From contig DF236973.1 in assembly GCA_000708835.1 (NCBI GenBank), positions 62,001-126,000 of the forward strand: a stretch of DNA of 64,000 nucleotides, written 5' to 3'. Both the position numbers and the translations under genes were made by a program. The DNA is from Klebsormidium nitens (taxonomy: Eukaryota > Plantae > Klebsormidiophyceae). The notes below the pieces were generated by a model. The model was not told the origin of the DNA and ran no database searches. It saw nothing but the letters and a program-made list of their open reading frames with translations. This document shows, piece after piece, positions 7,928 to 26,908 of the stretch (positions within the stretch are counted from its first letter, which is position 1; each line of letters opens with the position of its first letter).

Positions 7928-10900
7928 TTACATAGGCCCCAGAGCACCGTATCCGCCCTGCTCTAGTTCCTTTGCCAACTCTTTTCCGCCAGTCTTGACT
8001 ATCCGTCCGCTTTGCTGCAGAGGACCAAAAGTTCCACGTTAGCACAAGGTGAGGCACAGCTTTAGAGCAGTCAAACAAGGCGTAGTACCAGATACAAAGT
8101 GTCGTTCAGTCCCGTGACCAGTGTACGTTACGTCGTGATTGCTTTGCCTCTGAAATCACAAGGAACTGGCCGACAAACTTCATTACTGCCCGCAAATTAG
8201 CTTCCAAGCTGACAAGATCAGTCCGGCTCCTTGGACATCGAAAGAACTCAGTAGACGCTGTTCATTGCTGAAGCAGAGAAGTTGTCTCGTAGCCTTCTTT
8301 ACTGGAGGCTCAATGCAGAAACGAAGAGCCTGACGGACTCTGCGACTCTGAAATGCGCCCTCGGCTAAGTGCTTGAGCCCTTTCTTTAGCGCTTTTCTTG
8401 CAGCAGAAGACTCCGCCAAGTAGGAGGGCACGCAGACAAGTTTCTTGTGAAGCAAGGAAGAGGAGGCGATGGTGGCAGAGTCTGCACAGGAGGCATGCTC
8501 AGAGAAACCACTCCCTCGGATGGAGAAAATCCATTCCACGATGACGTGAGTACACAGGTCGAGCAGCGATGCCAGCACGAAAAGTTGCAGGCTGACTAGT
8601 CACCCGCACGGAAAGGGCTCCATTAGAGTTTGCATTTCACACGACGTGCTCACCATGATGTAAACGTACTCGTGCATGCTCTAGTTAAGAAAATGGGGAT
8701 GCGCACTTGGTAGCATGACATACCCCGAAAAGATTGAGGAAAGATGGATAAGCGCAAAAAAACTGTCCACCGAAACTTTAGAAGCAGGAGGTTGTTCTCA
8801 CCATGATGTGCACAAAGTCGGGCGTGATGTAGTCGAGCAGCCGCTGGTAGTGCGTGATGAGCAGAACCGCGTTGTTTGATTTACGGAGCCCGTTCACCGC
8901 CTCCGCGACGTCCCGCAGTGCGTCGATGTCCAGCCCGGAGTCAATCTCGTCTAGGATCGCGAGGTCGGCCTCCAAAACCTGAATATTGAGAAACAGGGTG
9001 TTGCATATTCTAACGTTTTCGAACCGAAATCGAAGAACCTCGTTCAGGATTGTCACGTTGGCCTCCAGGATCAGTACTCAGAGTCTTGCCTCAAGTTGTA
9101 ATCCAGATCTGAAATGAAACAATCATTCAAGGGTACAGGCGCTACTCGCTAAAAGTCCTCAAATTCAGCGAAACATGATGTAACGGCTACTGCAGTTGGA
9201 TGTCCGAGGGCAAGGCAAAAGCCCAGAAGCTTCAAGATGGTAGAGTTTCCAGAGACAAGCACTTACGGCGAGTTGCAGAATCTCGTTCCGCTTCTTTTCC
9301 CCCCCGCTGAAGCCCTCGTTGACGTTCCTTGAGAGGAAGCTGGCGTCCATTTTGAGCTGGTCCAGCTTGGGCGTCAGAAACGCATAAAACTGCAAGAAAG
9401 CAAGAGAGTGTATCAAACCTTGACCAGCCGGGACCAACATGGAAGAACGGATACCGTAGCAGGGTTCTCTGCGAGGACGTCTGGGTGCCGGGAACGTGTA
9501 TCAGAAGGAACAGCAATGGACAAGAAACGAAATCTCTAAGCAGCTCTAAACCAGCAAGTGAATTTCTGCAGTGCTTCCCTTGAAGACGAAGTTGTGCAAG
9601 ATCAAGACCACCAGACACAATTTCTTGAGATTCAGACGGAATGCATTCTTTGAGTTGTGTTGTCTCCTCTTGCGAAAACCATCAAAAACCGGTCAAAGTC
9701 GAACAGCGAAGCAGAAGCCTGAGCTGCTTAAGATGAACCATGCTGCGTTCTTCCCCAACATTTGCCACAAAGTACGACCTCATATGCTTTGGAAACGATC
9801 ACCGGTGCTTGCTTAGCACTTTCGCCTGCACGCATTGCAAACGCCACGAAATCTATTCCGCACAATAGGAGTGTCCATGCAGACCCGTTCATTTTCTGAA
9901 GAGGAGCTGCTTTCATTATGGGCTTGGTCATCTCCCTAAAGTCTGAAGTGGACAAGTTTCTGAAAGCCAGGCTGCCTCCTGCCTCACCTCTAACGGGTCC
10001 AGCTCTTTGAGCCCCTGCGCTTGCCGCCGCGCGTTGTGCGCCATGCGCAGGAAGTCCGTGTTGCTGACACCTGGCACCTCGACGGGCGACTGGAAGCTGA
10101 GGAACAGGCCCGCGTGGCTCCGCTCCTCCGGCTCCAACTCAAACAGGTCCTTGCCCTTGAACTTGGCGGAGCCCCCTGTCACGTCGTAGTCCGGGTGACC
10201 CACGAGCACCTAGGCGATATCGACAAGTGGTCTCATTGACGGGAAAGAATGTTTGCGAGGGAGGGGAGTGGACAGCTGATTAAGTTCTTGATTTTTGGAT
10301 CCATTGAACGACTTCTACAGGGGATATTTTCGACTACCAAAGTGGCATGAACTCCTCAAGCGGACTGGAAAGTATTTCCACCGTCCTACAGATAGGCAAA
10401 GCAGAAATTAACAGGCGCTTGCGACTATCAAAATGTTAAGGATGCTTTGCACTGCTAGAAACTATTACTTCGAACTCAGAGTTGATTGAGCTAGCCGATC
10501 GAAAAAACCCGGTACAAGAGGAGGTGCTCCGTCAATGACCTGAAGCACAGCGTACGTGAAGCACTCACCTTTGAGAGGGTGCTCTTTCCGGAGCCATTCT
10601 TCCCCATGATTGCATGGACCTCCCCCTCTCGGATTGTGATGTTTAACCCTTTTAGAATCTGCCGGCCCCCATCCGCAACTTCCGCTTCTAGCCCCTCAAC
10701 CTCCAACAACACCTGTGCCATCAGAAAATAGCCATTACAACAGGGAGTATTTGAGGCAACTGCATCTCTTTATTCAATCATGGAACCCTTGGACGTCAGA
10801 AGGACATACATTCTTTGAGAGGAGTGGCCGACCATATGTAGAACAGCTTGTGTCAACTCTTCTCGTAATGCAGAAGATACCAATTGCACCATTTGCAGGT

Positions 10901-11962: not shown

Positions 11963-14900
11963 ATGGGGAAGAATCAGCATTCAAAGGATCGGATGTATGT
12001 GACCGCAACGGAGTGGAAGACTGAAGGCGGGGGGAACAAAGATCGGGACCTGAGGACGCCGTTTAAACGGCTTCCATTCTATTGCTGCGCGTAAGCTTCT
12101 TAGAACAGCGATTGTGCAGTTGAAAAATGAATCTTTTTAAGGCTCTGGTTTGGTTGACGCATTCTGAGAAGCATGATGATCAGGACAATTGGTGGTATAG
12201 TCAGCTAGGGCGCGGGCGGTTGAAATCATTTGAAAGCCTAGGTATGTTTGAAGGGGTCCCCTTTCTGAAGGAAGGCCGCGACACGTACATCTCTGGAATT
12301 CATGATTATTGTGTGCCTCTAAGTCCACCGTTGCTGCTCTGTATGTCAAGGAGCCTGACTTATCCTCCAAAGTTTCGGCAAACTTTATAAAGGCCTGGAA
12401 GCAGCCATAGCTGGGCAACTAACACTCTCCCTTTTCGATTGCTGTGTGACACTATAATCACGTATGACCACCTTGATAATTGGTGAACGGAAAGGACATG
12501 TCTACAAGATGTCTGCGAGGAATCATACAGTTAATGGTGGTGAACCACCTGCACAGCTCCGATCACAAATTGCCACTCCGTCTGTCTGGGTGGTTCTTCT
12601 TTGTTTCTTCTTTGTTGGTTCAATCCCAAGGGAGATGATTGCAGTTGCTTCATGTGAAAAGTTCTCAGGAGCCATTGGGATGCAGAGTCCATCTTGATTC
12701 TACCACGTTGATCTTCAAAGCTTCACCACCTTCCCCACGTTCAAACGCATACACACCAGCAATTTCCCTCAAGCCCCCCTAGGCCCCCAGGGCATCGCAC
12801 GCCGCAACTTACAAGCTGTGCCTTGCTGTCTGATGCAGGCTTACATTTGTGCCATTCGAGGACCCAGTTTGCACTGCAGAGGGGCATGTCTTCGAAATCA
12901 TGTGAGTTCCATGGACAAGCCTCTTTCTTTTCGTTTTTGGGGAAAGGTCACAAGGGGATCTCCTAGAAATTGCCGATGATAGGTGTCAAGGTCAGCCGCC
13001 CATGCATCGCGATACCCAGTACTCAGAGGTGGAGACGGCGCAGCAATAGCCAGAACGGTTTTTCGTGTTGAACATTTTGTCTGGTGTCTGCTGAGTATGC
13101 TGCTCAAATTGCAGTGTTGGGACCCTTTTATCCCCTTGTGAGGTTGGCTATTGCTGGCAACTCCAACTCCGTCGTAGCCGTTTTGAGAGCGGAGGGTAGA
13201 TTAGAAGAATATCGGAGAGCTCAGCTGCTAGCAAGTCACATGAATGGATACTTCCAACTTTTGTCAAAAACGATTTATGCTTTTCAGTCCCCTCCCCCGA
13301 CCCTGGCAGTAACATCATCCAGTGACTATAGGAGTCTTATCTTAACCTCAAGTCTCAATCAGTTGTGAAGAGCTTACGAGAGGTACTTCCACCCCGAAGT
13401 CACATCATTCCTACAGTCCAACTCTTCTTGGCAGCTGAACAATACCACATGGAACATCCAAAATCCTGAAGCGTCAATCTGATCGTACGTGGCCCCTTCT
13501 GCAGCAACATCATTCCGTACCTCCAAAAGTTCCACCGCAACCCGGTGACGGGCAAGCCGCTGGAGGTGAAGGACTTGATCAAGCTGCAGTTTCACAAGAA
13601 CGGGGAGGGCGAGTACCAGTGCCCCGTGCTCGGCAAGGTCTTCACCGAGTTCACGCACATCGTCGCTGTCAAGCCCACCGGGCATGTCTACAGCTACGAG
13701 GTAAACGGCGCTGCTCTTAACTCCCCTTGTCCGTCTGGGTTTGTGTAATCTTCCTACTTTCAGCCGTTTTAGGTGAGAAAGAAGCTCCGGGCGCTGCATT
13801 GGTCTGATAGATCCCCATAAGGTGGTCGCTGCCGGCCCGGCGCCCCATTCCATCTCACTTGGTCGCCTTCTGATGTTGTTCGCGCGAGTAGTTTTGATTG
13901 GCGACGGGTGAGCGACTGGGAATCCCGATGATTTGAAACAATCAGGCTCATCAATCTCGTCGTGTGTCAGCTTTCAAGGGAAGGAGTGAGTCCAGTTCCG
14001 CTCTGGGACATCCTTTTTGGGTCGAAATATTCTGTGTTGAAGTTTTGACACCTTCTTTCTTGAGGCCGTTCGGAAGCTGAGCAGCAAGGCCGGGACTTGC
14101 CGGAATGTCATCGTTTCTGCTTAGAGCAGCATATACTTGAAGAGGGCGTCAGGGAACCGGTCCCCCCTGACATCAGCCGCATAGCGCGATTTTTGATGGC
14201 TCGGGCGATTCTACCCGTTTGAAGTCGAATTTCAAAATGGGTGTAGGCCCGACCTGCCCGGCGTACGGACAGATTGAAAAAAGTTGTTACGACCGAGTTT
14301 CGATTGCTTGATTTCGTAGTGCAATTTAAGCGCACTTCCCAGTTGTGCTAAAATGTTCCCTGTGCCCAAGTTTGTTCGAAATTCTACCGCTCGGGCCGGT
14401 GTTCGAAGTCTGACGCCTTCTTTAAGTTCGTATCGAAACCATTTTGGAAGCTGTCTTGGTGACTCTCTTTTGACGTAGAATTTACGCTCGAACTCTTATC
14501 TTACTCTTTCGCAGGCAGTCCGCGAGTTGAACATCAAGGCCAAGAACTGGAAGGACCTGCTGACGGACGAGCCATTCACGCGCGCTGACATCATCACGAT
14601 CCAGGACCCCAACAATGTTGCCGCCAGCAAGCTGCTGACGGAGTTTGACCACGTGAAGCAGAACCGGGCAGTGGTTGATGCGGATGCGCCGCCGGAAGAC
14701 CCAACGCAAGGGATCCGCATGAGCGAGGACCATAAGCGGGTGTTCCAATCGCTGGGCACAGATGAGGTGAGCCGTTGGACAGATGTGCAGTTATTTGCAT
14801 CACAAAGGTAGGAGCGCTGTTTAGTTTAAGTGAAAGTACGAAGCCTTCTGAAGTCGTTAAGTTGCCGGGAAAATAGACGACTGGTATCGTAGGATCAGCA

Positions 14901-17900
14901 CAATTCAGCACTTCGAGAGAAAGGAGACCATGACAGACTCTTCTGGGAAACGAAGTTCTTCACAACACGTACATTTACGGATTCGCTTAGATAATCTCAA
15001 TTTTCCGTTTTAAAGATTGATTTTGCGGCAATAGAGAAGCTTTTTTGAAATCTGTCTTTTCACTTCTGTCTCCCCATTTATTCCGCTATCACGACGACTG
15101 TTCTTGATTCCTTGTCTCTCTGCAAACTTTGTTTACGATGATATTTGTTCTTTCTCTGGTCAGGCTAAGAAGGCCATGGCTATGGGCGGAGGTGGGAGCA
15201 AAGCGCAGAGCGAGCGCGCGAAGGCGCTGGCAGCTTTAGAGGCCGCAAAGGCGCGGAAAGCTCTCGACAGCGACAAGAAGCCTGAGAAGCAAGCGCCGCT
15301 TAGTATCGTCGATGCTGCGTCCGCCAGCGTGGCCGGAAGGAGCGCTTCCGCTGCGAAGGCAGGGACAGCGGAACAGGTGCGAGCCCTATGTTGTGCGGTT
15401 TCACATTTGAAGCTTACCGCATGAAATAGTGTAGAAGTTGCGAGCGGAGGGCCTCGTAAGAACAAGAAGGTCGTCGCTTGTCAACTGGACACTGACGAAA
15501 GAAGCTTGACACGTTCTGCTTCCGCCGTATAAGGGTTGATTCACTCGATGGCTCTGAGAGAATTTAAGCTACATACTTTTGATCAAGAACTGCCAGACAC
15601 GTCCCGACCCCGCTTCGACGACATCTCAATGTTCATAAGCCTCACAACGGTCAGCACGGCTTAGAATTGACCATCTTTGATGGCTTGAGATCCTAAAATC
15701 CAAATGTAGAGTGTTTTTGCCATCTCAATCCATACGTGCCTGAGGTAGCTTTGTAACCACTCCAACGGCGATATCCCGAGCCAGATTGTCGCCGTTTCTA
15801 CACACCCTCTTCTTGCTCTGCCGACCCTTCTGAACAATCCCCTGACTCCGTTTTGCCCTGACTCCCTTCTCCCTTCGCTGATGACGTACCCGCCCGGAAA
15901 CCCAAAACAAACCCTGCCTGCTACTATCCAAAAGTACATCCAAAAGTTTAAACGGATTTTGAATTGTGTCATTTTTCGCAGACGGCGGCTCGAGTGGCTC
16001 TCCACGCGGCCGGCGCGCGCGTGCCGGTGCGCGCCAACGCCAAGACGGTGGTCAGCCGCTTCACGACGTCCAAAATGTCCGGCTCCTTCACATCCACGGC
16101 GCTCACGCCGTCGACCAAGCAGGAGTTCGCCATCGAGATTGTAAGTTTTGCGGTTTCGTTTGCGTCCTTAAGTTTTGCGGTTTCGTTTGCGTCCTTACAC
16201 TCCGTGATCGCTTCTATTCAATTTTGGTTCCAAAAAGGGTTGTATATGCCTGGCGTCGTCCCCGAAGCAGGAGGTCGCCATGTTATATGTTCGCTTTTCT
16301 TTCATCAAGTGGACTTTCTGTCCGACTGAACTCCAATTCTCACTTTGGTCAGAAACCTTGGGTTGAGAATCTGCTCAGCAACAAACGTGACTAGGTTACT
16401 GGTCTGCCGCTCATCTTCCGAAGCAGATCTTGTGGTTCATGGTGGAGGAGTGAAAAGGATTGGGAAAACCGCTACTGAATCCTGGTAATCAAGGTCAAGT
16501 CCTCAAGAGCTGCGTATTAGTCCATGCGCGCGCAGTCAGCTAAAAACCGTGCAGGTACCCTCTGTGAACAGTAAAATTTCACTTGCGTCTTTTTTGACGG
16601 CTCTCATCAGCGAGTTTTGGCCAGTCAGACGTAAGTGTGCAAAAAGACAAGCTTGCGCTTGCTTAATAAGTGCTTGTTTTCCACGACGTTTTGAGACAAT
16701 ATCAATAGCTAAAGCGCACTGCGGAAGCATTCTTTTCCTTTCTTTCGTCCGGGCAATTCACGAGATAGCCTCCTTCAATGAACCCTAGGTTTTCTGCCTC
16801 CGTTTTTCCAGGTGGAGCGCAACCCGAAGAAGAAGGGTTACGTGCGGATGCAGACGAATCTGGGCGACCTGAACATCGAGTTGCACTGCGACCTCGCGCC
16901 GCGGGCGTGCGAGAACTTTATCACGCACTGCGAAAGCGGCTACTACGATAACGTCATCTTCCATCGAAACATCAAAAACTTCATGATCCAGGTGGGCTTA
17001 TTCGCAGCTTTTTATACCAAGTCGTAAAATTTTGCTGCCCTCTCTATCAACTGACGTGTTCCAGTCGCATGCTCTTCCTCGCTTTCGCATGTTTCAGGGC
17101 CAGTCAGAAGACCAAGTCGCAGACACCCCTAGTAAGCAGATTGAGAGTGGCATTGCGAAAAGGACAGGCATATCTTTTTCAAGTCAGGAGAAACATCTGC
17201 CCGCTCACACTTTCTTTAGAAGCGGACCCCTTTTGTTGCCATTACTATGTCGGGCACGTGATTCTTTTCAGTTGGAAATCTGCTTGCTCGTTAACCCAGT
17301 CTTCTTGACGATGCCGGAAAATGCAGTCCAGAAGATTCGCTCGCAGAAGTTTTCAGTACCCCGTCGTTTCACCTGGGTTTGTTGAACCATCTTTCAAGCA
17401 TGCTGAGCAATTACCGGCAGCAGTTGCACACCCCATGTGGACGATTTCACGCGCAGGGGGGTGATCCAACGGGCAGCGGGAAAGGGGGGGAGAGCATATG
17501 GGGGAAGCCGTTCAAGGACGAGTTTACGTCACAACTTACGCACTCGGGGCGGGGCGTTTTGAGCATGGCGAATTCGGGGCCACATACGAACGGCTCGCAA
17601 TTCTTCATTCTGTACAAATCGGCGCAGCATCTGAATAACAAGCACACCGTCTTCGGCCAAGTGGTAAGTCCATCAAGGAATGTAGGGGTTTTAGAACAAA
17701 GACTTGACATGGTTCCTATTTTTCCAAGATGGTCCGGTTGGCGGGTGCGTGATTGGAGGTCGAGGTCATGAATGATCTTAAATGTGGCTCAGGGCTTGGT
17801 CCTTTTAATGACGCTCGCTTGCGTTATCGAGTGTTTTTCTGAAGTTGCATCAAGGTCAGAACGTAGATTGCGCTGTTTTGCGATCAAGGAGCAGGTAGAA

Positions 17901-19190
17901 TCTGAGCAAGAGCACAGGGGCATGGGTTGTAAACCGCTTGAAAAGGACTGAGTGTCTTGCTGTTGGGCCGTTCAAATATATTTTCTTTTGTCTGTATCGG
18001 TTTTCGTGTCGCAAGCGCCTTAGCGGCAATCTGTTCGCTCGCCTCGCCTTTTTATGTCTCGGCAAATGAGCACCAACTTTCATGGCGACCATCTGCATAC
18101 CGGACTTTGTTTGTGTCGTCTGCTTTGTGTCTCTCAGGCCAGATTAGAATAGAGTCCTTTAAGCTAATATTTGTTTACTCCTTGCTGCAAATGGTCCCAC
18201 ACATCTCACTGCATCGCTACAGACCAACTGTCGTAACAAGAACTCTTTGTTTCGTTACATGCAATTTCTTACAAAATCATCATGCAGATGGCAGATTCAT
18301 GCGGAGTCAGTTTCGCGTCTCTGAAAGCTTGAAAGAGTCGGATGAAGTCATGCGCTTCTTTGAACATGTCCAGGTGGGAGGAATGGAAACCCTCGCCGTA
18401 ATGGAGCGGATACCGGGAGACGAAGAAGACCGACCAAAGAAGGAAATCAAGATGTTGTCTTTCAAAATCTTCGTCAATCCGTACACGGAACCAGACGAAG
18501 AGGAGGTAAGCAGAGAAAGCATCCTGGTGTCCAAACTTGGTCGATCGGATCAATGTAGACTGAAGCAAGCTTTTCCAGTTTGCTGTGTCAGCCGAACCCT
18601 TCATAGACTGGCGAGGTTGCCTCATAAGCTTTGCGAGTACTGATGCAAATATTGCATCTAATATTTTGGGGCTTCTTCATAGGATTACAAGTCCGGATCA
18701 AAGGTCGGCTACCTGTCAAGAACCATTGTGATCTGATGGTAAATATCGTCTGTTCTGCCGGAAGTATGAGGTCCTTGATTCTGGTGACATCATTTGCTTT
18801 CGATCTTGCTTCGTATCAGATGATTTGTCAGCAGGAGTGAGTCCACATACATTCATCCAAAAAGTTGCGTCGCGCTTGGGACAGAGCCCATATGGTCTGA
18901 ACGAGCATCCTTCTTATCGGCAGGAGGCGGAACGGAAAAAGGCGGAAGAAAAGGCGGAGAAGGAGGCGAGACGAGACGAAGAAGAAACCGTGGGGCAATG
19001 GTTCAGCAATCCAACCGGAAACAGTGACCTAAAGCCGCTTAGGGCAGGTGTAGGCAAGTATATGAAATTACCGCCAGCTAGTTCAAGATTAGCAGTGAGC
19101 TCCAATGGTGGTCTAGAAGATGGCCCCCCTGCCAAGCAACGAAAAGTGGAGAAAAGCGGTGGCGGATTTGGCGACTTCTCGTCTTGGTAG
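11963..19190 (+). CDS. PPIL2: Cyclophilin with N-terminal U-box-like domain (PPIL2/CYP60/CYP65 ortholog); about 10 exons: 11963-12090, ~12838-12901, 13505-13700, ~14515-14766, ~15163-15377, ~15981-16140, 16812-16991, ~17456-17663, ~18373-18505, ~18923-19190
   Basis: [18 protein letters not shown]...[87 protein letters not shown]; cyclophilin core [61 protein letters not shown]; C-terminal FGDFSSW. Confidence 0.95.
16142..16197 (+). repeat. Perfect 27-bp tandem duplication directly after a splice donor
   Basis: TAAGTTTTGCGGTTTCGTTTGCGTCCT occurs twice, starting 1 nt into the intron (GT at 16141). Confidence 0.9.
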
Positions 19191-19614
19191 CGATCTTTGT
19201 GACGCTCTGAACCAATCATTTGTATATATGTAGAGAGGCTCTTGGTGTCGCGTCGGCATTAGCCATTTGAAAGGTATGGCCTTCGTGCTGGCCAATATTG
19301 ACAGCTAGGAATGCAAATCCATACATGGTCACATCTGGGCGTTCAATGAGCCTAATATCACCTGCACCTCTTGGCTGTCTGCAAGGCCTTCAATAATACA
19401 AGCAACCAAATGCGGCAGCTTTCAGACTCGATGAGGGCCTGATATCATCTGCCGACGCACCCACGATGATGCGGTCCGCGGAAGACGATGGGACGGCAGT
19501 GTACGTACTCTCTACCAATAACAAAAAGAAAAACAATGTCCTGATTCGATATACAGATTGTTATTCGGCTGCCAAATCAGGCTAGCCGCTGAGCGCTTTT
19601 AGGCATGTCATGCA

Positions 19615-19989: not shown

Positions 19990-22669
19990 TCAGCAGTACA
20001 CTTGTGCCATGTGGGACTGCAGCCGGGATTTACGGAGCAGTCGAGTGACGACAACTGACGACAGTGACGAGTGGGCGGACCGGCCGGGACTGATTGTACG
20101 GCCGCCGCGCACTTATTGCATGACCGTACGGCTCAGCTGTGGCTGCTGGCAGGCAGAGGCGGCAGCAGCGAGGCTGACTACTAACTAGAACAAAGCTTAC
20201 CTTGAACCAAACCCTAACCTTAAAACCCCTAATTACGTACCACATATCGTACAAACTCTTTTCCGTACTGCTGATTCCGTTCCGCTTCACTCTTCGGAAT
20301 CCCCACCAGGACGGAACGAAACACCCCTGGAAAGCAAAGAACCGGAATACATCCCAAGCTGAGCGTCTTCTTCGTTTCAATGCAGAGCTACAGGTTACTA
20401 CGAAGAATCTCACTCAGGTCGAAGGAGTGACCACAAGGAACTCAGCCAGTAAGAACAAAGGGGCTTCAGGCGGAAAACCAAACCGCACCGAAAATGACCC
20501 AGAGAATTCCAAGCTCCCCGTAGGTATACCTCAACTAAGTCAAAGTTCTGGATCATTCCGCTCTAGAGAATGTCCTTGTATCCTTTTCCTATGCTGACGG
20601 AATGCTTCGCTGACTCGGACTGTCTCAATCCGACCGTTGGAAACCGCTTAAACCCTGGCCAGCCGTCGGCGAGCCAGCACGAAACCTGGTGGTTCGCACT
20701 TATGAACTGGAATCGCGCGAGTCGCAACAGGGGCTGCGCACTGAAATATTTAACCAGTCGACCGCGCGTCAGACTCAATGTGCGACTATCCGTTGTTTAC
20801 TCGCGCCGAAAACGGAAGAAGGCCATGTCGCATCGCGAGCGACGAGCGGTCGCTTTCAGGCGCGAGACAACTCCGCTCGTCAATGACTTGCAAAGAGCTA
20901 AGAGTTTGTTCAGAAAGACGTGAGAAGAGTAGGAGAAAGGTTGAAGAAGAGGAAGACCGCAGCGACAAGTGGGATGCTTCCACTTTTGTCATCAATCCAA
21001 GGGTTTAACATTTCTGTGCTCTCTACCTCACATCTCGACTACGCCCAAGCTTCAAGAACACCAGCCAAGACTGACAACAGCTCCTCTCCCTTCCCCTGTA
21101 CAGGTATGAACGGTTCCAACATCGTTTGGATCAACTATGAGGCAATGAAAGCCGCAGGGAATGCATGATTGCATGACGAAAGCTGAAGTGGGTTAAATGT
21201 TTGCTGCACGTTTGTTATTTCTGATTGTCCAGCAAGAGGTGTACACCTTTGCATCTGATCATTCATCCCCAGGCCCGGTACTTGGTCCCCAGGCAGATTA
21301 TATAGGTTAGTCAGTCAGTTTACTTGCATAGCTCCAACGGCAGCAGTTGCGGGTTCAATCCCAAGAACTGAGCAACAATAGAGCAGACCAGAACTGACTG
21401 GGATTGTGAATTAGCATCTTGGACAATCTATATTGCATGTGCAAGAGCGATAATTAAGTTGGAACTCCATATACAGACCTTTCAGAATCGGAAGGGTTTC
21501 GGTTGAATTCTATCAAGCCTTCTCTCTGGATCACTGATCCAACATAAGATATATCTGCTCTCAACATGCCTATGATTTAACGTTATCGTTGCTAGGGGAT
21601 CAGGATGCGGAGAGGGTTCTCTCGTGCCTATGAAACGAGAGACAAAACTGATCTTGCATTATGGCTTGGATGCATTTTCAGTCTTGTCGATTTTGTCAAT
21701 TTATACTCTGAGCACCCGCGAGGGGCCGCGACTTGGGCTGACCTGCCTCGCTCCGTGCATGTGCTTCAGCAGTCGTAAATGCTCTGCTGCAGTGGGAATC
21801 TGACATAATCGATTGTATGTTGAGTTAGGTTGACGTTTGAGTTTCAACCAGTTCCCCGGGCACTACATAAATCAAGAGTCAACATAGCCGTAACTCAACA
21901 TCGAATCGATACTACTGGCACCCACGGCTGCATGATTGCAGCCTTGACTTCCAGCATTAACACCGACAACTCCCGCTTTCGCTGCAACCTTCTGATTTGA
22001 GGCTTTGGAAGCACTCAGTGACACGTACTCAGGCCTGTGACACGGGTCTGAGGGTCTGTTACAAGACATTGACTAGAAGTTAGCCGACGCAAGCGACCAA
22101 TCAAAGTTTCAGGCTCAGAGCGCTGATTTTCAGCCAGTGTTGAAAGTCTGCAACTCCGGCGACTTGCACCTATTGGGGCGACCGATGTGACGTCAGCTTT
22201 CTGACCATCTAAATCCTGCTCAAGTCCAGCTACGACTTCCTGCTTGCCGGGCGCATATGACTTTAGTGTATGCCCAACAAGGGCCGACAGGGATGCAGCA
22301 GTAGTAAGTGCGTTCATGCGGTTTTCAAAGTTGGTACCTTCTGCCGGCCGGACAAGCAATCTCTGTGGGTATAAAAGCGAAGCCACACCTCGCACTTTCT
22401 TCAAAACAACTCCGGCGCTAGAGTTAGCAGTTCGCCTCAAAGCGCCCCCACTGCAAACCTCAAGGCAAGCACGCGCAAGAACCACTCGCCCTAAGCGCTC
22501 CAATACCAATTCCCTACTCACCCCTTTCCTCCCACTCCTCCTTCAAGCGGCTTTCAGGTCCCTTCTTCCACTGACGCCCCAATCACTGCCAGTTTGCTCA
22601 GACCCTACAAACAGTGCGAAGCAACCAAGCCAACGCAGGCCTTTCACTCTGACCACTTTTGCGGCGACC

Positions 22670-25600
22670 ATGGCCGCTCGATTCAGTAGCCCCCGGGCAG
22701 CGACCCTTCTCCTGGTCGCCGCGCTCTGCCTGGGCAGCGCCGCCGCTTTTGCGCCGCTGTTCAGCACGGGAAACCCGGACGGCAGGATCGCAGTCGCGAC
22801 GCGCCCGGATGGAGTGAATGGCAAGTTTGAGATCGAGGCCGGGGACGACTTTCTGGCCAAGGCGGGGCAGAGCGTCTCTAAGGTGGGCAGAGGTTTGCAG
22901 ACATTTTGAGTTCACATAATTTCTTGATTGGATCTTGCGTAGAATCTGAGCACAAGTTGGTATACTAAACTGACCCGAGAATTGAGAAAAGCTTGTGCAG
23001 AGTGAGATCAGAGGCCCTTGATTCTGCTGTTCGAGAAATATAGATGACTGAACTTGTTTCGACATCGACTCCTTGAAGCTGCAAGGCAAAGCAGAGTAGC
23101 GTATATGAAGTAAGAGGGTACTCTTGTGCATCGGTACTCTTGTACATCTCTACTTTCACTGCGCAGCCGACTCGTGACGAACACAGCTCTGCGTTTCCGG
23201 ATTGTTTTTCTGGCCGCTGGCGTCGTTCCGAAGTCTATCACAATATGCTGAAGGAGCAGCAGTATCAGTGATTGATAGGACCTCATTCCGATGCCTTTAC
23301 TACAGATTGAATTGAGCTCTTGAGATCGGAAGATAAGGTGGTGGCAAATCCTACGCGCTGCATCTTCTCGCGAAAGGGGTGCAAAACATCATGCATTTCT
23401 TCAAAGATAAATTCCTTTTTCAGATCAGATTTCGAACCAAAGGAGACAAAAACGACAAAAACACCTCTGACCTAACCTCGGTTTATCTAACCTCCGACCC
23501 CGCCTCCTCTCTGTTTCCCAGGTGACTTTCACCGGGCTTCTCCCCTCGGGCTTTTCCCTCGCCTCCGCCCAGGACTCTGTCGTCCAGCTGGAGCTGTACC
23601 GGGTGTTCTCCCGCGACAGTGACGTCAGCCGCTGCCAGGACGCCGACCCTCACACAGTCTGCCCCACGGAGAACGTCGTCACCCGGGCCAATTCCCCGAG
23701 CGACGAGGCGGCCCCCGAGTTCGACCGGTCAACCGAGGACGGGACGCTCTTCTGCGAGGTGTTTGGGGCGAACCCGAGCGATAACTTCAACTTCCTGGAT
23801 AACTCGGTGAGAGACTGGTGGGACTCGTTTCAGATCTGGAATGGTTTCGGGATAGTATGAGCGTATATGTACAGCTCGTTGACCTTGCGAGCTCTTGAAG
23901 AGGGGCCACTCCAAAAGCCTTATTACAGACGAAACAGGAACTCGGAGAAAACGGCTAAGGTTCTCAACTGCTTCTTATCTGAAGTGCCAAAGTCACGAGA
24001 TCCTTGGCAAACAGATCAACTTTTAGAACCGGCCCCTCTGGTCTTCCAGTCTTCGTTAAGAGCAAGACTTCAAGCCCTCTGCGTTCTGTCGGAATCATAA
24101 GCACTGTCCCGTCTCTTACTCTGCGCAGATAGTAGAATGCAATGGCCTGAACGAATTTCCACAACCGCATTCGATCAAGCACGCAGCTGCCTTGATGACC
24201 GAATTCCTGACCGACCTCCAGGATTGTACTTTTACCCCGTCTCCATTCACAGCTTTTTGCTGTTTCAGAAGAGCAAGAGCGAGCACTTTAATCAAAGCCA
24301 TCTTTCCCTCCCGCCAGGTGGTCGACTTCTATTCCGCCAACTCCGTTCTTCCGGGCGGCATCCACAAGAAGACGGAACTGCCCACCGGCGGAAACGGCGG
24401 CGTGACGGGCCCTGTCGTCACATTCGTGTGCGACTTCGCAGCGAACCACCCCTGGACCTTCTCCGCTGACGAGCACTTCTTCTTCGTGCCCAAGGTCAGC
24501 CGCCAAGAGATTTCTGCAAATATTCGCGCTGATCTTTGCGCTTTGCTTTAGGGCAACAAATCTTCAACCAATCGTTTGTTAGAGTCAGCTCCCATATGAT
24601 TTCTCGCAACACTTTGCAGCATGACAAAACACAGGATTCAGAGGGGCCGCTCGAATTCAGTTCAGTTGTTTTATCGTCCGGGTCGATCAGATTCTGAGGA
24701 GTTACGATATCAAGATTTCTGCATCTCGTCGCATGCTCCCTGCGTACCGTGACGCAATCGTGTTTCTCATTCCTGCTGACCTTCTTTGTTCCGGCTGCGT
24801 TCAACCGGTCTACAGACATTCCTCACACCTTCTGAATAAGACTCACAATTCTATACCGCCACATTCCAGTTGAGACCTTTTTTCTTCTCTGAAAGCACAT
24901 GACGCATTAGACATCGACTTCAAGCACCCTTTATAAGTTTGCTGTCTCTTTTTAAGCGATCTGATCCTTAGTTCTTATCAGAGACATCGTGTTTACATGT
25001 GTGCTAGGAAAAACTTCAACTTTCAGCATTGGAATCCGTAGTTTACCACTCTACCCATCCGAGCTCCGGAAACTAGTGTGGCTCGTCCGGCCGTTGGCGG
25101 ATCACCTCTTTCAGAGCACTTTCCCTAACCACTTGCGAAACCCGGCGGTTTTGAGGACGGCACGCGAGAAACGTCGGCACATCAGCTCCGGCAATCGCTT
25201 GTTGCCCTAATCCGACGAGTTTGACGATCAACGACGCTTAGCCAGAACCCCTTGTCACCCCCAAGGCGGCCCTTCCCTTGGGCAAGGTCCCGATGCTAAC
25301 CAGCACTTCGTTTGACGCTAACCAACATTTCGTTTCCCCTCAGATCGCCCTTCCCCTGGGCACGGACAACGCGGACCGCGGCGATTTCCTGTGGCTGTCC
25401 GCACCCAAGCCGCTTACGAACGGCTTCGCCTTCTCCCCCGACCTCCAGTCGTGGACCCGGGACTTCACCATCGACCCCGACTGGGTGCGCATCGGCACTG
25501 ACGTCGTCGGGGGATCCCCCGCGCCGACATTCAACCAGGTCTTCGCGCTGTACCCGACCGGAACCCCCGGGCCCAAGTTCTTGGCGCAGGGCGACTTCTG

Positions 25601-25730
25601 CGCGGCCGGTAACCCGTGCTTCAACGCCGTCGGCACGCGCCAGGTGTGCTGCCCCGGGAGCTGCGCCCCGGGCACTCCTCCCGCGGGGATCCCCACGTGC
25701 GAGGGTGGAGCCAGCCCTGTGTTCCCGTAG
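22670..25730 (+). CDS. Secreted protein resembling bacterial PEP-CTERM-family extracellular proteins, with a C-terminal 6-Cys module; exons 22670-22882, 23522-23806, 24318-24494, 25344-25730
   Basis: Signal peptide MAARFSSPRAATLLLVAALCLGSAAA. Core FSTGNPDGRIAVATRPD..FEIEAGDDF..TFTGLLP..VELYRVF..TRANSPSD..NSVLPGGIH..TGGNGGVTG..HFFFVPKI..FLWLSAPKP..DLQSWTRD..DPDWVRIGTDVVGGSPAPTFN. All three introns are GT-AG, phase 0. The exon 2 donor could instead be near 23758. Confidence 0.82.
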
Positions 25731-26908
25731 AGACTGACCGAAAGAACCATCTTCAGTGCAGAGTACTAAGAGCGAAGAGTGAGGAAGAGTTGACTTCAAG
25801 GATGCAGCCTTTGCCAGAAGTGTAATGGAATATGATATGCCTACTTTGAGAGAGTTCTATGATACCGTAGAGCGCTAACAGTTTCGAATGAAGAGAACCA
25901 TTGCATACGACTTGCTTGAGATTGACGTCCTCCGCCACGTTTTGTTTGAGAGAGCTTTTATGTAATCGGTACTGGTTAGAACATTTCAATATCTGGACGT
26001 TTTGTGTGACAGCTCAATAGATATCAACCCAACATGTAATAAGAACCGCAAAAGATGTTCCATAGTACCGGCCCGGGTATATGTAAAAAGGTTCGAATCA
26101 TGAACGAATCAAACGCAGATGCTGGTCTCTGCTGCGACGTCGGAGTATATGCTACACATTCATGCACATGTATACGATTTTGTCAGTGCAGCGCCAGCTG
26201 AGGATCGTATGCGGCCGCCATGCCCACTTGCCAGAGCATGCGCACGCGTTTACAACCATCTCTCGGATCATTGTCGGCGCGACGGCCGCCCGGAGATTCG
26301 TCATATATTCAGCACTTGAAGTAATTCTCAAGCGGCGGATGCGCTCCTTTATATGTGCATTAAGGGGATGCAGCGCATCGGGACATGCATGGAATTTTAT
26401 AACGTACGCGCAAATCATTGCATGATTGATCGGGGATTGGAACTGAAGACAGGGTACGTTATCATCATTCACCCTGACTGCATGACATGATTCAAGTATC
26501 TCGCGTCATAATTGTCGAAGCACGTATCACAGTGTATGGCACATGCATGTGCAAACCGACACAAGCAGAGTTGGAGCGCCACTATAGGCACCGGACAGGC
26601 TCCATTCGAGAAGCGGCGGAATCGTGAGCCGGATTATTATAATGATAACCGACTTTCAGGGGACAACGCGCATCAAGCATGCAACGTTCATTGTCAATGA
26701 GTCTCGGTCCGACTCGTACCACAAAAATCAGTAAAAGATCGATGGTGGATCTATAAGCTGTTCATCATATTCTTCGTTACATACCTTTCTCTGCAGCACA
26801 TACCTTTCTTTGCAGCAAAACGGACGGTCAAGTCCAAAAGCTTCCATGAAACAACGCGCGACGCGACCTGTGACTGTACCTACTCTACAAAATATGATCT
26901 CTGGCGTT

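Follow-up and report, generated by a model that had tools for sequence, protein, structure and literature searches.

A spliced Klebsormidium nitens gene related to bacterial PEP-CTERM-anchored proteins and ending in a cysteine-rich tail

Gene structure, transcripts and conservation

The window analysed here is a stretch of 64,000 nucleotides (nt) from the alga Klebsormidium nitens (GenBank assembly GCA_000708835.1, contig DF236973.1, positions 62,001 to 126,000 of the forward strand), and the positions given below are counted from its first letter. On its plus strand lies a gene of four exons, which extends from the ATG at 22670 to the stop codon at 25728-25730 and encodes a product of 353 residues. 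The four exon translations correspond, without gap or overlap, to residues 1-71, 72-166, 167-225 and 226-353 of the public protein KFL_000240120 (P0019), which has been annotated as a "hypothetical protein". The gene is very probably of bacterial origin, having gained introns and lost a bacterial surface anchor. All exon lengths are multiples of three, and all three introns start with GT, end with AG, lie in phase 0 and contain polypyrimidine tracts (Table 1). The initial annotation, which was made from the letters of the window, had described four exons, a signal peptide and a series of motifs, and all of these are present in the sequence: FSTGNPDG (residues 31-38), TRANSPSD (125-132), FLWLSAPKP (240-248), DLQSWTRD (258-265), DPDWVRIGTD (269-278) and APTFN (285-289). 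The N-terminus of KFL_000240120 resembles a signal peptide, with a basic start, a hydrophobic core and the sequence AAAFA. The signal peptide of the bacterial relative P0138 can be aligned with it, and in the AlphaFold2 model residues 8-20 form a helix.

Table 1. Features of the KFL_000240120 gene and their positions in the window
Feature	Position	Strand	Description
Mature transcript, minimum extent	22400..26000	+	Contigs of 1654 and 1722 nt with 5' untranslated region, four exons and 3' untranslated region; they overrun both ends
Exon 1, coding part	22670..22882	+	Residues 1-71; predicted signal peptide and first part of the core, with FSTGNPDG and FEIEAGDDF; tblastn match to bacterial P0138
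Predicted signal peptide	22670..22753	+	Residues 1-28; putative cleavage near AAAFA/P, from the sequence
Intron 1	22883..23521	+	639 nt, GT..AG, phase 0; skipped in two studies of organism A and in organism B
Exon 2	23522..23806	+	Residues 72-166; TRANSPSD; alga-specific C109, C118 and C149
Intron 2	23807..24317	+	511 nt, GT..AG, phase 0; skipped in runs X1, X5, X9 and X13
Exon 3	24318..24494	+	Residues 167-225; PGGIH, TGGNGGVTG, EHFFFVP; alga-specific C204
Intron 3	24495..25343	+	849 nt, GT..AG, phase 0; skipped in X1, X5 and X13; loose ends in X9 fit the joint
Exon 4, end of the core	25344..25562	+	Residues 226-298; FLWLSAPKP, DLQSWTRD, DPDWVRIGTD, APTFN
TPGP	25563..25574	+	Residues 299-302; aligned opposite bacterial VPEP; likely relic of a PEP-CTERM signal
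Tail and stop codon	25575..25730	+	Residues 303-353; six cysteines at 25599-25700

The predicted splicing has been recovered in assembled sequence data. Transcript-sized contigs that match positions 22400-26000 skip exactly the lengths of the three introns (639, 511 and 849 nt) at GT..AG borders, and all three predicted joints are thereby seen. They occur together in single contigs from two studies of K. nitens (organism A) and from organism B, a relative at about 93% identity. Fragmentary contigs, one of which runs across the second joint, were obtained from a third K. nitens study. The contigs lack the introns and belong to runs of 30-40 Mb of contigs, and they are therefore as expected of transcriptomes. 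Within intron 3, a single contig of 245 nt from run X1 covers positions 24937-25181 at a depth of 2.2, compared with 106 for the mRNA; it may be an unspliced precursor or a minor separate transcript. A scan for sigma-70 promoters and terminators gave no more than chance would produce, which is what one expects if the gene is eukaryotic.

The gene is also conserved in relatives. The related genomic contig L001 retains all four exons at 85-93% identity, the introns not being alignable. The gene on the upstream side, with its cyclophilin exon, is likewise retained there, which amounts to synteny. The ratio of synonymous to non-synonymous codon differences is 58:23 against L001 and 31:6 against organism B, and this excess of synonymous differences in the coding sequence indicates that the gene is under purifying selection. 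No cysteine codon is touched by any of the listed differences, those to organism B included. The GC content amounts to 62-70% in the exons and 46-49% in the introns, and to 86% at third codon positions, base composition having been calculated from the concatenated exons.

Bacterial relatives of the core and the changes in the alga

Exons were used one by one as queries, and full-length searches were made with the public record P0019. Exon 4 alone finds short proteins that are 58-72% identical and end with VPEP, a hydrophobic helix and arginines, and many of them carry PF07589. The initial annotation had attributed the motif series to bacterial extracellular proteins with a final VPEP and membrane helix, and these matches, which have a basic cluster in addition, bear this out. 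Exosortase-bearing bacteria that produce exopolysaccharides attach proteins to the cell surface via such PEP-CTERM tails. The exosortase substrates are described by the models TIGR02595 and PF07589 (Haft et al. 2006, as cited in PMC11878542).

The bacterial family is large. A word search with P0019 gave 1855 matches, and among the 120 matches listed there is no eukaryotic name besides P0019 itself. A phmmer search against 1.84 billion representatives of clusters formed at 50% identity gave 875 matches at an expectation value (E) of at most 1e-3, of which 62 reached 1e-30 or better. Identities above 80% were found, among the matches listed, only for the exon-sized fragments P0001, which is encoded on L001, and P0286 and P0291, which match exon translations of L001. 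When bacterial and archaeal genomes were considered with one genome per species, 258 loci were found to encode a relative; the 80 loci that were fetched belong mostly to soil and peat metagenome bins, Plasticicumulans acidivorans DSM 23606 (L068) being the sole cultured and named strain among them and the remainder all being metagenome bins. The sequences placed in the tree described below represent at least eight phyla, namely Pseudomonadota, Acidobacteriota, Verrucomicrobiota, Planctomycetota, Armatimonadota, Myxococcota, Nitrospirota and Methylomirabilota. This broad bacterial distribution, compared with Klebsormidium as the only eukaryote among the matches listed, agrees with the horizontal acquisition that had been proposed at the outset.

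Full-length bacterial members comprise about 295-305 residues, with a signal peptide in front of the core and a sorting tail behind it. Among 90 sampled members, 68-73 match PEP-CTERM models, as the initial annotation had anticipated for the bacterial homologues; VPLPA-CTERM models are matched by 13, VPDSG-CTERM models by 5 and MYXO-CTERM models by 2. In the bacterial variant P0323, VPEP is replaced by VPGP. Further members end in Ig-like extensions, and the bacterial proteins P0134-P0137 and P0223 contain two or three tandem copies of the core; the tandem form P0134 has a dockerin-like end, and the other tandem forms end in a short DGF or DGL motif instead of PEP-CTERM. Over 91 sequences including P0019, 42 columns are invariant. 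The pairing of one core with alternative anchors is also known from choice-of-anchor domains. This likeness is one of shared behaviour, not of membership, and none of the named choice-of-anchor models of NCBIfam was matched by the 91 members at E of 0.01 or below.

The algal protein is collinear with these bacterial proteins. A BLASTP alignment of P0019 with P0138 shows 48% identity over 298 columns (E of 1e-72); it starts inside the two signal peptides, aligns core residues 29-298 end to end, crosses all three exon junctions and ends with TPGP opposite VPEP. In a tblastn search, P0138 detects all four algal exons in the correct order. The introns interrupt a reading frame that is continuous in bacteria, and they are therefore a signature of intron gain after the transfer, which had also been suggested from the window alone and which agrees with the joints in the transcript contigs.

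The C-terminal part has changed most. The 51 residues that follow TPGP lack VPEP, a membrane helix, a basic cluster and a hydrophobic C-terminus; they include D, Q, N, K and six cysteines and end with GGASPVFP. PEP-CTERM models match neither P0019 nor exon 4. The loss of the bacterial anchor had been read correctly, TPGP now standing where VPEP would be expected. A C-terminal glycosylphosphatidylinositol (GPI) anchor or membrane helix was rejected for the algal protein because the tail lacks a hydrophobic C-terminus, and KFL_000240120 would accordingly be classed, from these features, as a probably soluble secreted protein, neither membrane- nor GPI-anchored. The cysteine content differs as well: bacterial members have a median of one cysteine, and 43 of 90 have none, compared with ten in the mature algal protein, of which four lie in the core and six in the tail. 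Where the four core cysteines stand, the bacterial columns show T, F, a gap and V; the L001 relative has retained all four of these cysteines.

Compared with PEP-CTERM substrates, the algal protein thus shares a collinear core with 45-50% identity, the position of the signal peptide and the TPGP at the VPEP site. In contrast to them, it lacks VPEP, the membrane helix and the basic cluster, and it has introns and ten cysteines. To our knowledge, an exosortase is not expected in a eukaryote. Judged by its sequence, the algal protein is a relative of an unnamed family of cargo domains and not a PEP-CTERM protein, because the sequence features of that signal were looked for and are absent.

The following course of events may be envisaged. 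In the donor, a beta-sandwich domain of about 270 residues would have been preceded by a signal peptide and followed by a sorting tail of the PEP-CTERM type or a related one. Once in the alga, the signal peptide, which is of the Sec type, may have been reused as a signal for the endoplasmic reticulum, and three phase-0 introns were inserted into the once-continuous reading frame, as can be seen from the collinear alignment. VPEP has probably decayed to TPGP, and the membrane helix and the basic cluster have visibly disappeared. The cysteines seen in the core and the tail were gained, which would fit a stabilisation by disulfides in the eukaryotic secretory pathway. A transfer from bacteria to the alga, and not in the opposite direction, is indicated because hundreds of clusters in at least eight phyla are found compared with one genus, because the family carries bacteria-specific sorting signals of which a relic is present in the alga, and because introns have been gained.

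The cysteine-rich tail

The tail has the spacing C-x5-C-x9-CC-x3-C-x11-C, with 34 residues from the first to the last cysteine, and neither VPEP nor a membrane helix follows APTFN, as had been noted before. It shares its exon with the end of the core and begins directly after the VPEP relic. In organism B, the whole tail is present in the transcript. On the contig L001, the match stops just past the third tail cysteine (L001 positions 10352-10434; in the window, after 25649), and the contig ends 80 nt later; this break could be either a contig-end artefact or a real difference of the tail in that relative.

The tail resembles knottins, or inhibitor cystine knots, in having six cysteines in the order C-C-CC-C-C and loop lengths within the usual ranges. 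It differs from them in that there is no sequence match and in that the tail model is of low confidence: a single-sequence AlphaFold2 model has a predicted local distance difference test (pLDDT) score of 56 and contains one hairpin. Relatives of the tail were found neither in Pfam nor in the PDB, in which the best match (sclerostin, E of 0.54) is noise, nor by features in the ESM Atlas. A single match to a metagenome contig of the Joint Genome Institute (L082) was rejected as an out-of-frame artefact over a phosphatase-like gene. The designation "knottin-like", which was based on the order of the cysteines, has found no further support, given the weak tail model and the empty searches of PDB and Pfam. 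The proposal that the module is "eukaryotic" has not been borne out either: the tail lies in the exon of the core, TPGP stands at the VPEP site and the similarity to candidate modules does not exceed that of shuffled sequences. From the sequence, the tail may either have evolved in place from the decayed anchor region or have been acquired by a fusion without an intron.

Two cysteine-rich sequences were compared with the tail. The first lies at positions 1-1041 of the window on the plus strand, which contain the last two coding exons of another gene with its stop codon at 1039-1041. Each of these exons encodes a module of about 45 residues with the pattern C-x11-C-x11-CC-x4-C-x12-C (DPQGRYVCC, GYVPP), and a linker rich in proline and serine lies between the modules. 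The second is found in P0240, a bacterial protein of 363 amino acids, in which the core is followed by a linker of threonine and proline, an eight-cysteine module and an IPTL-CTERM-like end.

The neighbouring modules bear on the possibility of a swap, in which the bacterial anchor gave way to a copy of a six-cysteine tag that K. nitens would use on several unrelated secreted proteins. Among the accounts of the tail this one appears the most credible, although we would put it at clearly less than an even chance. Indeed, the gene at the start of the window has modules with the same C-C-CC-C-C order. However, BLASTP does not align the tail with the neighbouring module (869-1039), and with the cysteines held fixed the similarity is not above that of shuffles (p of 0.18; p of 0.04 was obtained only out of register). 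Moreover, no intron separates the tail from the core, and searches of the ESM Atlas and of metagenome contigs yielded no relative.

A slightly weaker case, and a rather doubtful one, can be made for a tail that arose in place: the decayed PEP-CTERM region would have been extended by read-through into former 3' sequence and fixed by disulfides. The position of TPGP, opposite VPEP in the alignment and suitably spaced from APTFN, speaks for this scenario, as do the exon shared with the end of the core and the lack of a detectable relative in the databases searched. Against it, no PEP-CTERM model scores the algal tail, which exceeds a PEP-CTERM end by about 20 residues.

It is improbable that in the donor protein the core was already separated from the sorting signal by a cysteine-rich module like that of P0240. 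The spacing in P0240, C-x5-C-x9-CC-x3-C with one extra cysteine in x9, and a pairwise BLASTP E of 0.009 favour this idea; however, in fixed-cysteine shuffles the similarity does not rise above chance (p of 0.31). Furthermore, among 319 family members examined, P0240 alone has such a cysteine-rich spacer, its core is no closer to the alga than those of other members (44% identity, and likewise in the tree), and the TPGP immediately behind the core speaks for a sorting motif that had no spacer in front of it.

The alga might thus have turned the region of the sorting signal into a disulfide-rich tail that holds the protein in the wall, or have replaced it by a lineage-specific six-cysteine tag, but such an "anchor swap" is a speculative proposal that we regard as unlikely on the present evidence. 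If it were true, a bacterial protein that binds biofilm or exopolysaccharide would have been re-tethered to a streptophyte cell wall, and it might contribute to the adhesion of this terrestrial alga in soil crusts and in the biofilms of bacteria.

Fold, function and origin of the algal protein

AlphaFold2, when supplied with an alignment of 91 sequences, predicts an all-beta core (pLDDT of 67, predicted template modelling score of 0.65) and a disordered-looking tail (pLDDT below 50). Foldseek found nothing in the PDB at E of 0.001 or below. In contrast, VIA-align matched the core, with Z scores of 9.3-9.6 over 144-152 residues, to jelly-roll domains, which belong to a capsid protein of PBCV-1, to a baseplate protein of phage phi812 and to Cwp84, in which the lectin-like domain is concerned (4ci7, Z of 9.3). 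Lower matches comprise PHR domains and the carbohydrate-binding modules CBM22, CBM27, CBM35 and CBM36 (Z of 4-6) as well as domain III of Cry toxins. In the ESM Atlas, the template modelling (TM) scores to bacterial PEP-CTERM and VPDSG-CTERM clusters are 0.58-0.78. The nearest named family by shape is DUF7901 (PF25470; TM scores of 0.48 and 0.66), whose members are often PEP-CTERM anchored; however, P0019 has no Pfam match to this family even at E of 10. The core is thus predicted to be a jelly-roll beta sandwich of the lectin or carbohydrate-binding-module type. The likeness to known jelly-roll sandwiches concerns the predicted fold class; there is no sequence relationship, and so common a fold implies no specific function.

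A lectin-like or carbohydrate-binding-module-like core could bind a polymer of the wall, the mucilage or the surrounding biofilm, where the cysteine tail would hold or stabilise the protein. Such an extracellular binding role is tentative, its chances coming close to even. Taken as a whole, the observations are probably best explained by a bacterial-derived, spliced and expressed algal gene, the product of which would now be a soluble, secreted, polymer-binding protein with a cysteine tail.

Several points weigh against this explanation. The "RNA" label of the runs behind the transcript contigs is a guess. Eukaryotes other than Klebsormidium are absent from the matches listed, eukaryotic genomes not having been searched directly. 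In a quick maximum-likelihood tree, the algal branch is long (1.54, compared with a median of 0.35) and stands weakly beside a Verrucomicrobiota sequence (support of 73); the alga is not nested in any supported bacterial clade, and the direction of the transfer therefore rests on distribution and not on topology. The core matched no Pfam or NCBIfam model above noise, either exon by exon or as part of the full protein, and a profile of the 91 sequences found no match in the PDB even at E of 10. No gene neighbour is conserved among the 80 bacterial loci, the commonest being an ABC ATPase in 8 loci, and the context therefore gives no functional clue. The secretion of the algal protein is deduced from its sequence, and the structural matches with Z of about 9 point to a very common fold. 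Finally, members from different phyla are 60-80% identical, which is more than one usually sees in a module that only binds and could hint at an enzyme.

Given the long algal branch and the weak placement beside Verrucomicrobiota, an assignment of the donor phylum from the tree was dropped. Of the phylogeny foreseen at the outset, the expectation that the relatives would be bacterial has held, and a supported nesting of the alga among them was not obtained.

An enzyme acting on an extracellular polymer, such as a lyase, an esterase or a peptidase-like protein that the alga has kept for its activity, seems unlikely but deserves consideration. Conservation is very high, with a mean column identity of 48-55%. 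R45, E54, E56, D59, D60, R98, D132, W242, D258, W262, R264, D265, D271, W272, R274 and D278 are invariant, His182 and His219 are nearly so, and most bacteria possess the core as a single stand-alone domain. However, no catalytic family was recognised by sequence or fold, and the structural neighbours are all non-catalytic beta-sandwich modules. Moreover, the tandem forms with two or three domains are more typical of binding or adhesive repeats.

An old eukaryotic gene that has disappeared from nearly all lineages is very improbable, and so is a transfer from an alga to bacteria. The position of the algal sequence outside the supported bacterial clades and near the midpoint root would be compatible with these possibilities, but this midpoint position follows from the long branch, and both the distribution (hundreds of bacterial clusters in at least eight phyla, compared with one eukaryotic genus) and the bacteria-specific sorting signals, of which the alga keeps a decayed copy, contradict them; vertical descent was rejected on these two grounds. 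Bacterial contamination or misassembly in the algal genome can practically be dismissed even though the closest protein relatives are all bacterial, because splicing and synteny refute it: the three GT..AG introns are spliced out in transcript contigs of several studies, the exon-intron layout and the eukaryotic neighbour gene recur in an independent related assembly, and the gene, whose exon and intron base composition is typical of the window, lies on a public contig of 366 kb.

The acquisition from bacteria, which we favour, is of a known kind, in which an anchored bacterial domain moves into a eukaryote; the twist is the change from the anchor to a cysteine tail. The Trailins of diatoms contain a bacterial-derived choice-of-anchor A domain (CAA, PF20597) of the beta-helix type and have been localised in adhesive trails (bioRxiv 10.1101/2023.03.06.531300). 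As is probable in the present case, a bacterial surface domain with alternative anchors was taken up by an alga, lost its anchor and is secreted. However, the domain family and the algal lineage are different, and the localisation in trails has been shown for Trailins, whereas the algal gene described here is known from its sequence. Metazoan MSP130 contains a choice-of-anchor I (COA-I) domain of bacterial origin (PMC11878542) and likewise exemplifies a PEP-CTERM- or LPXTG-linked bacterial surface domain that moved into a eukaryote, although domain and host are unrelated to those considered here. DUF3494 ice-binding proteins are also bacterial surface-domain transfers to eukaryotes (PMC7783341, PMC11645318). 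With the gene described here, a streptophyte example joins Trailins, MSP130 and DUF3494, which represent the small set of known cases in which an anchored surface domain passed from bacteria into a eukaryote. The colonisation of land by plants is studied in the Klebsormidium lineage as a model, and encounters with soil bacteria may have contributed genes to it.

No paper was found that contains the locus tag, or that treats Klebsormidium and PEP-CTERM together. As regards the suggested algal surface protein family, the searches made here showed one gene in one genus, and this gene has already been annotated as a hypothetical protein. This one gene shows steps of eukaryotic domestication, namely the likely reuse of a Sec signal, three phase-0 introns, a relic of a sorting signal and added cysteines. 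It also draws attention to a large and very conserved bacterial family of 875 clusters in at least eight phyla that has neither a Pfam or NCBIfam model nor a solved structure.

The neighbour gene upstream of KFL_000240120 extends over positions 13499-19204 on the plus strand and contains at least eight exon-like blocks, which are 88-94% conserved with L001. One of these blocks (16808-16996) matches the cyclophilin (Pro_isomerase) call on that contig.

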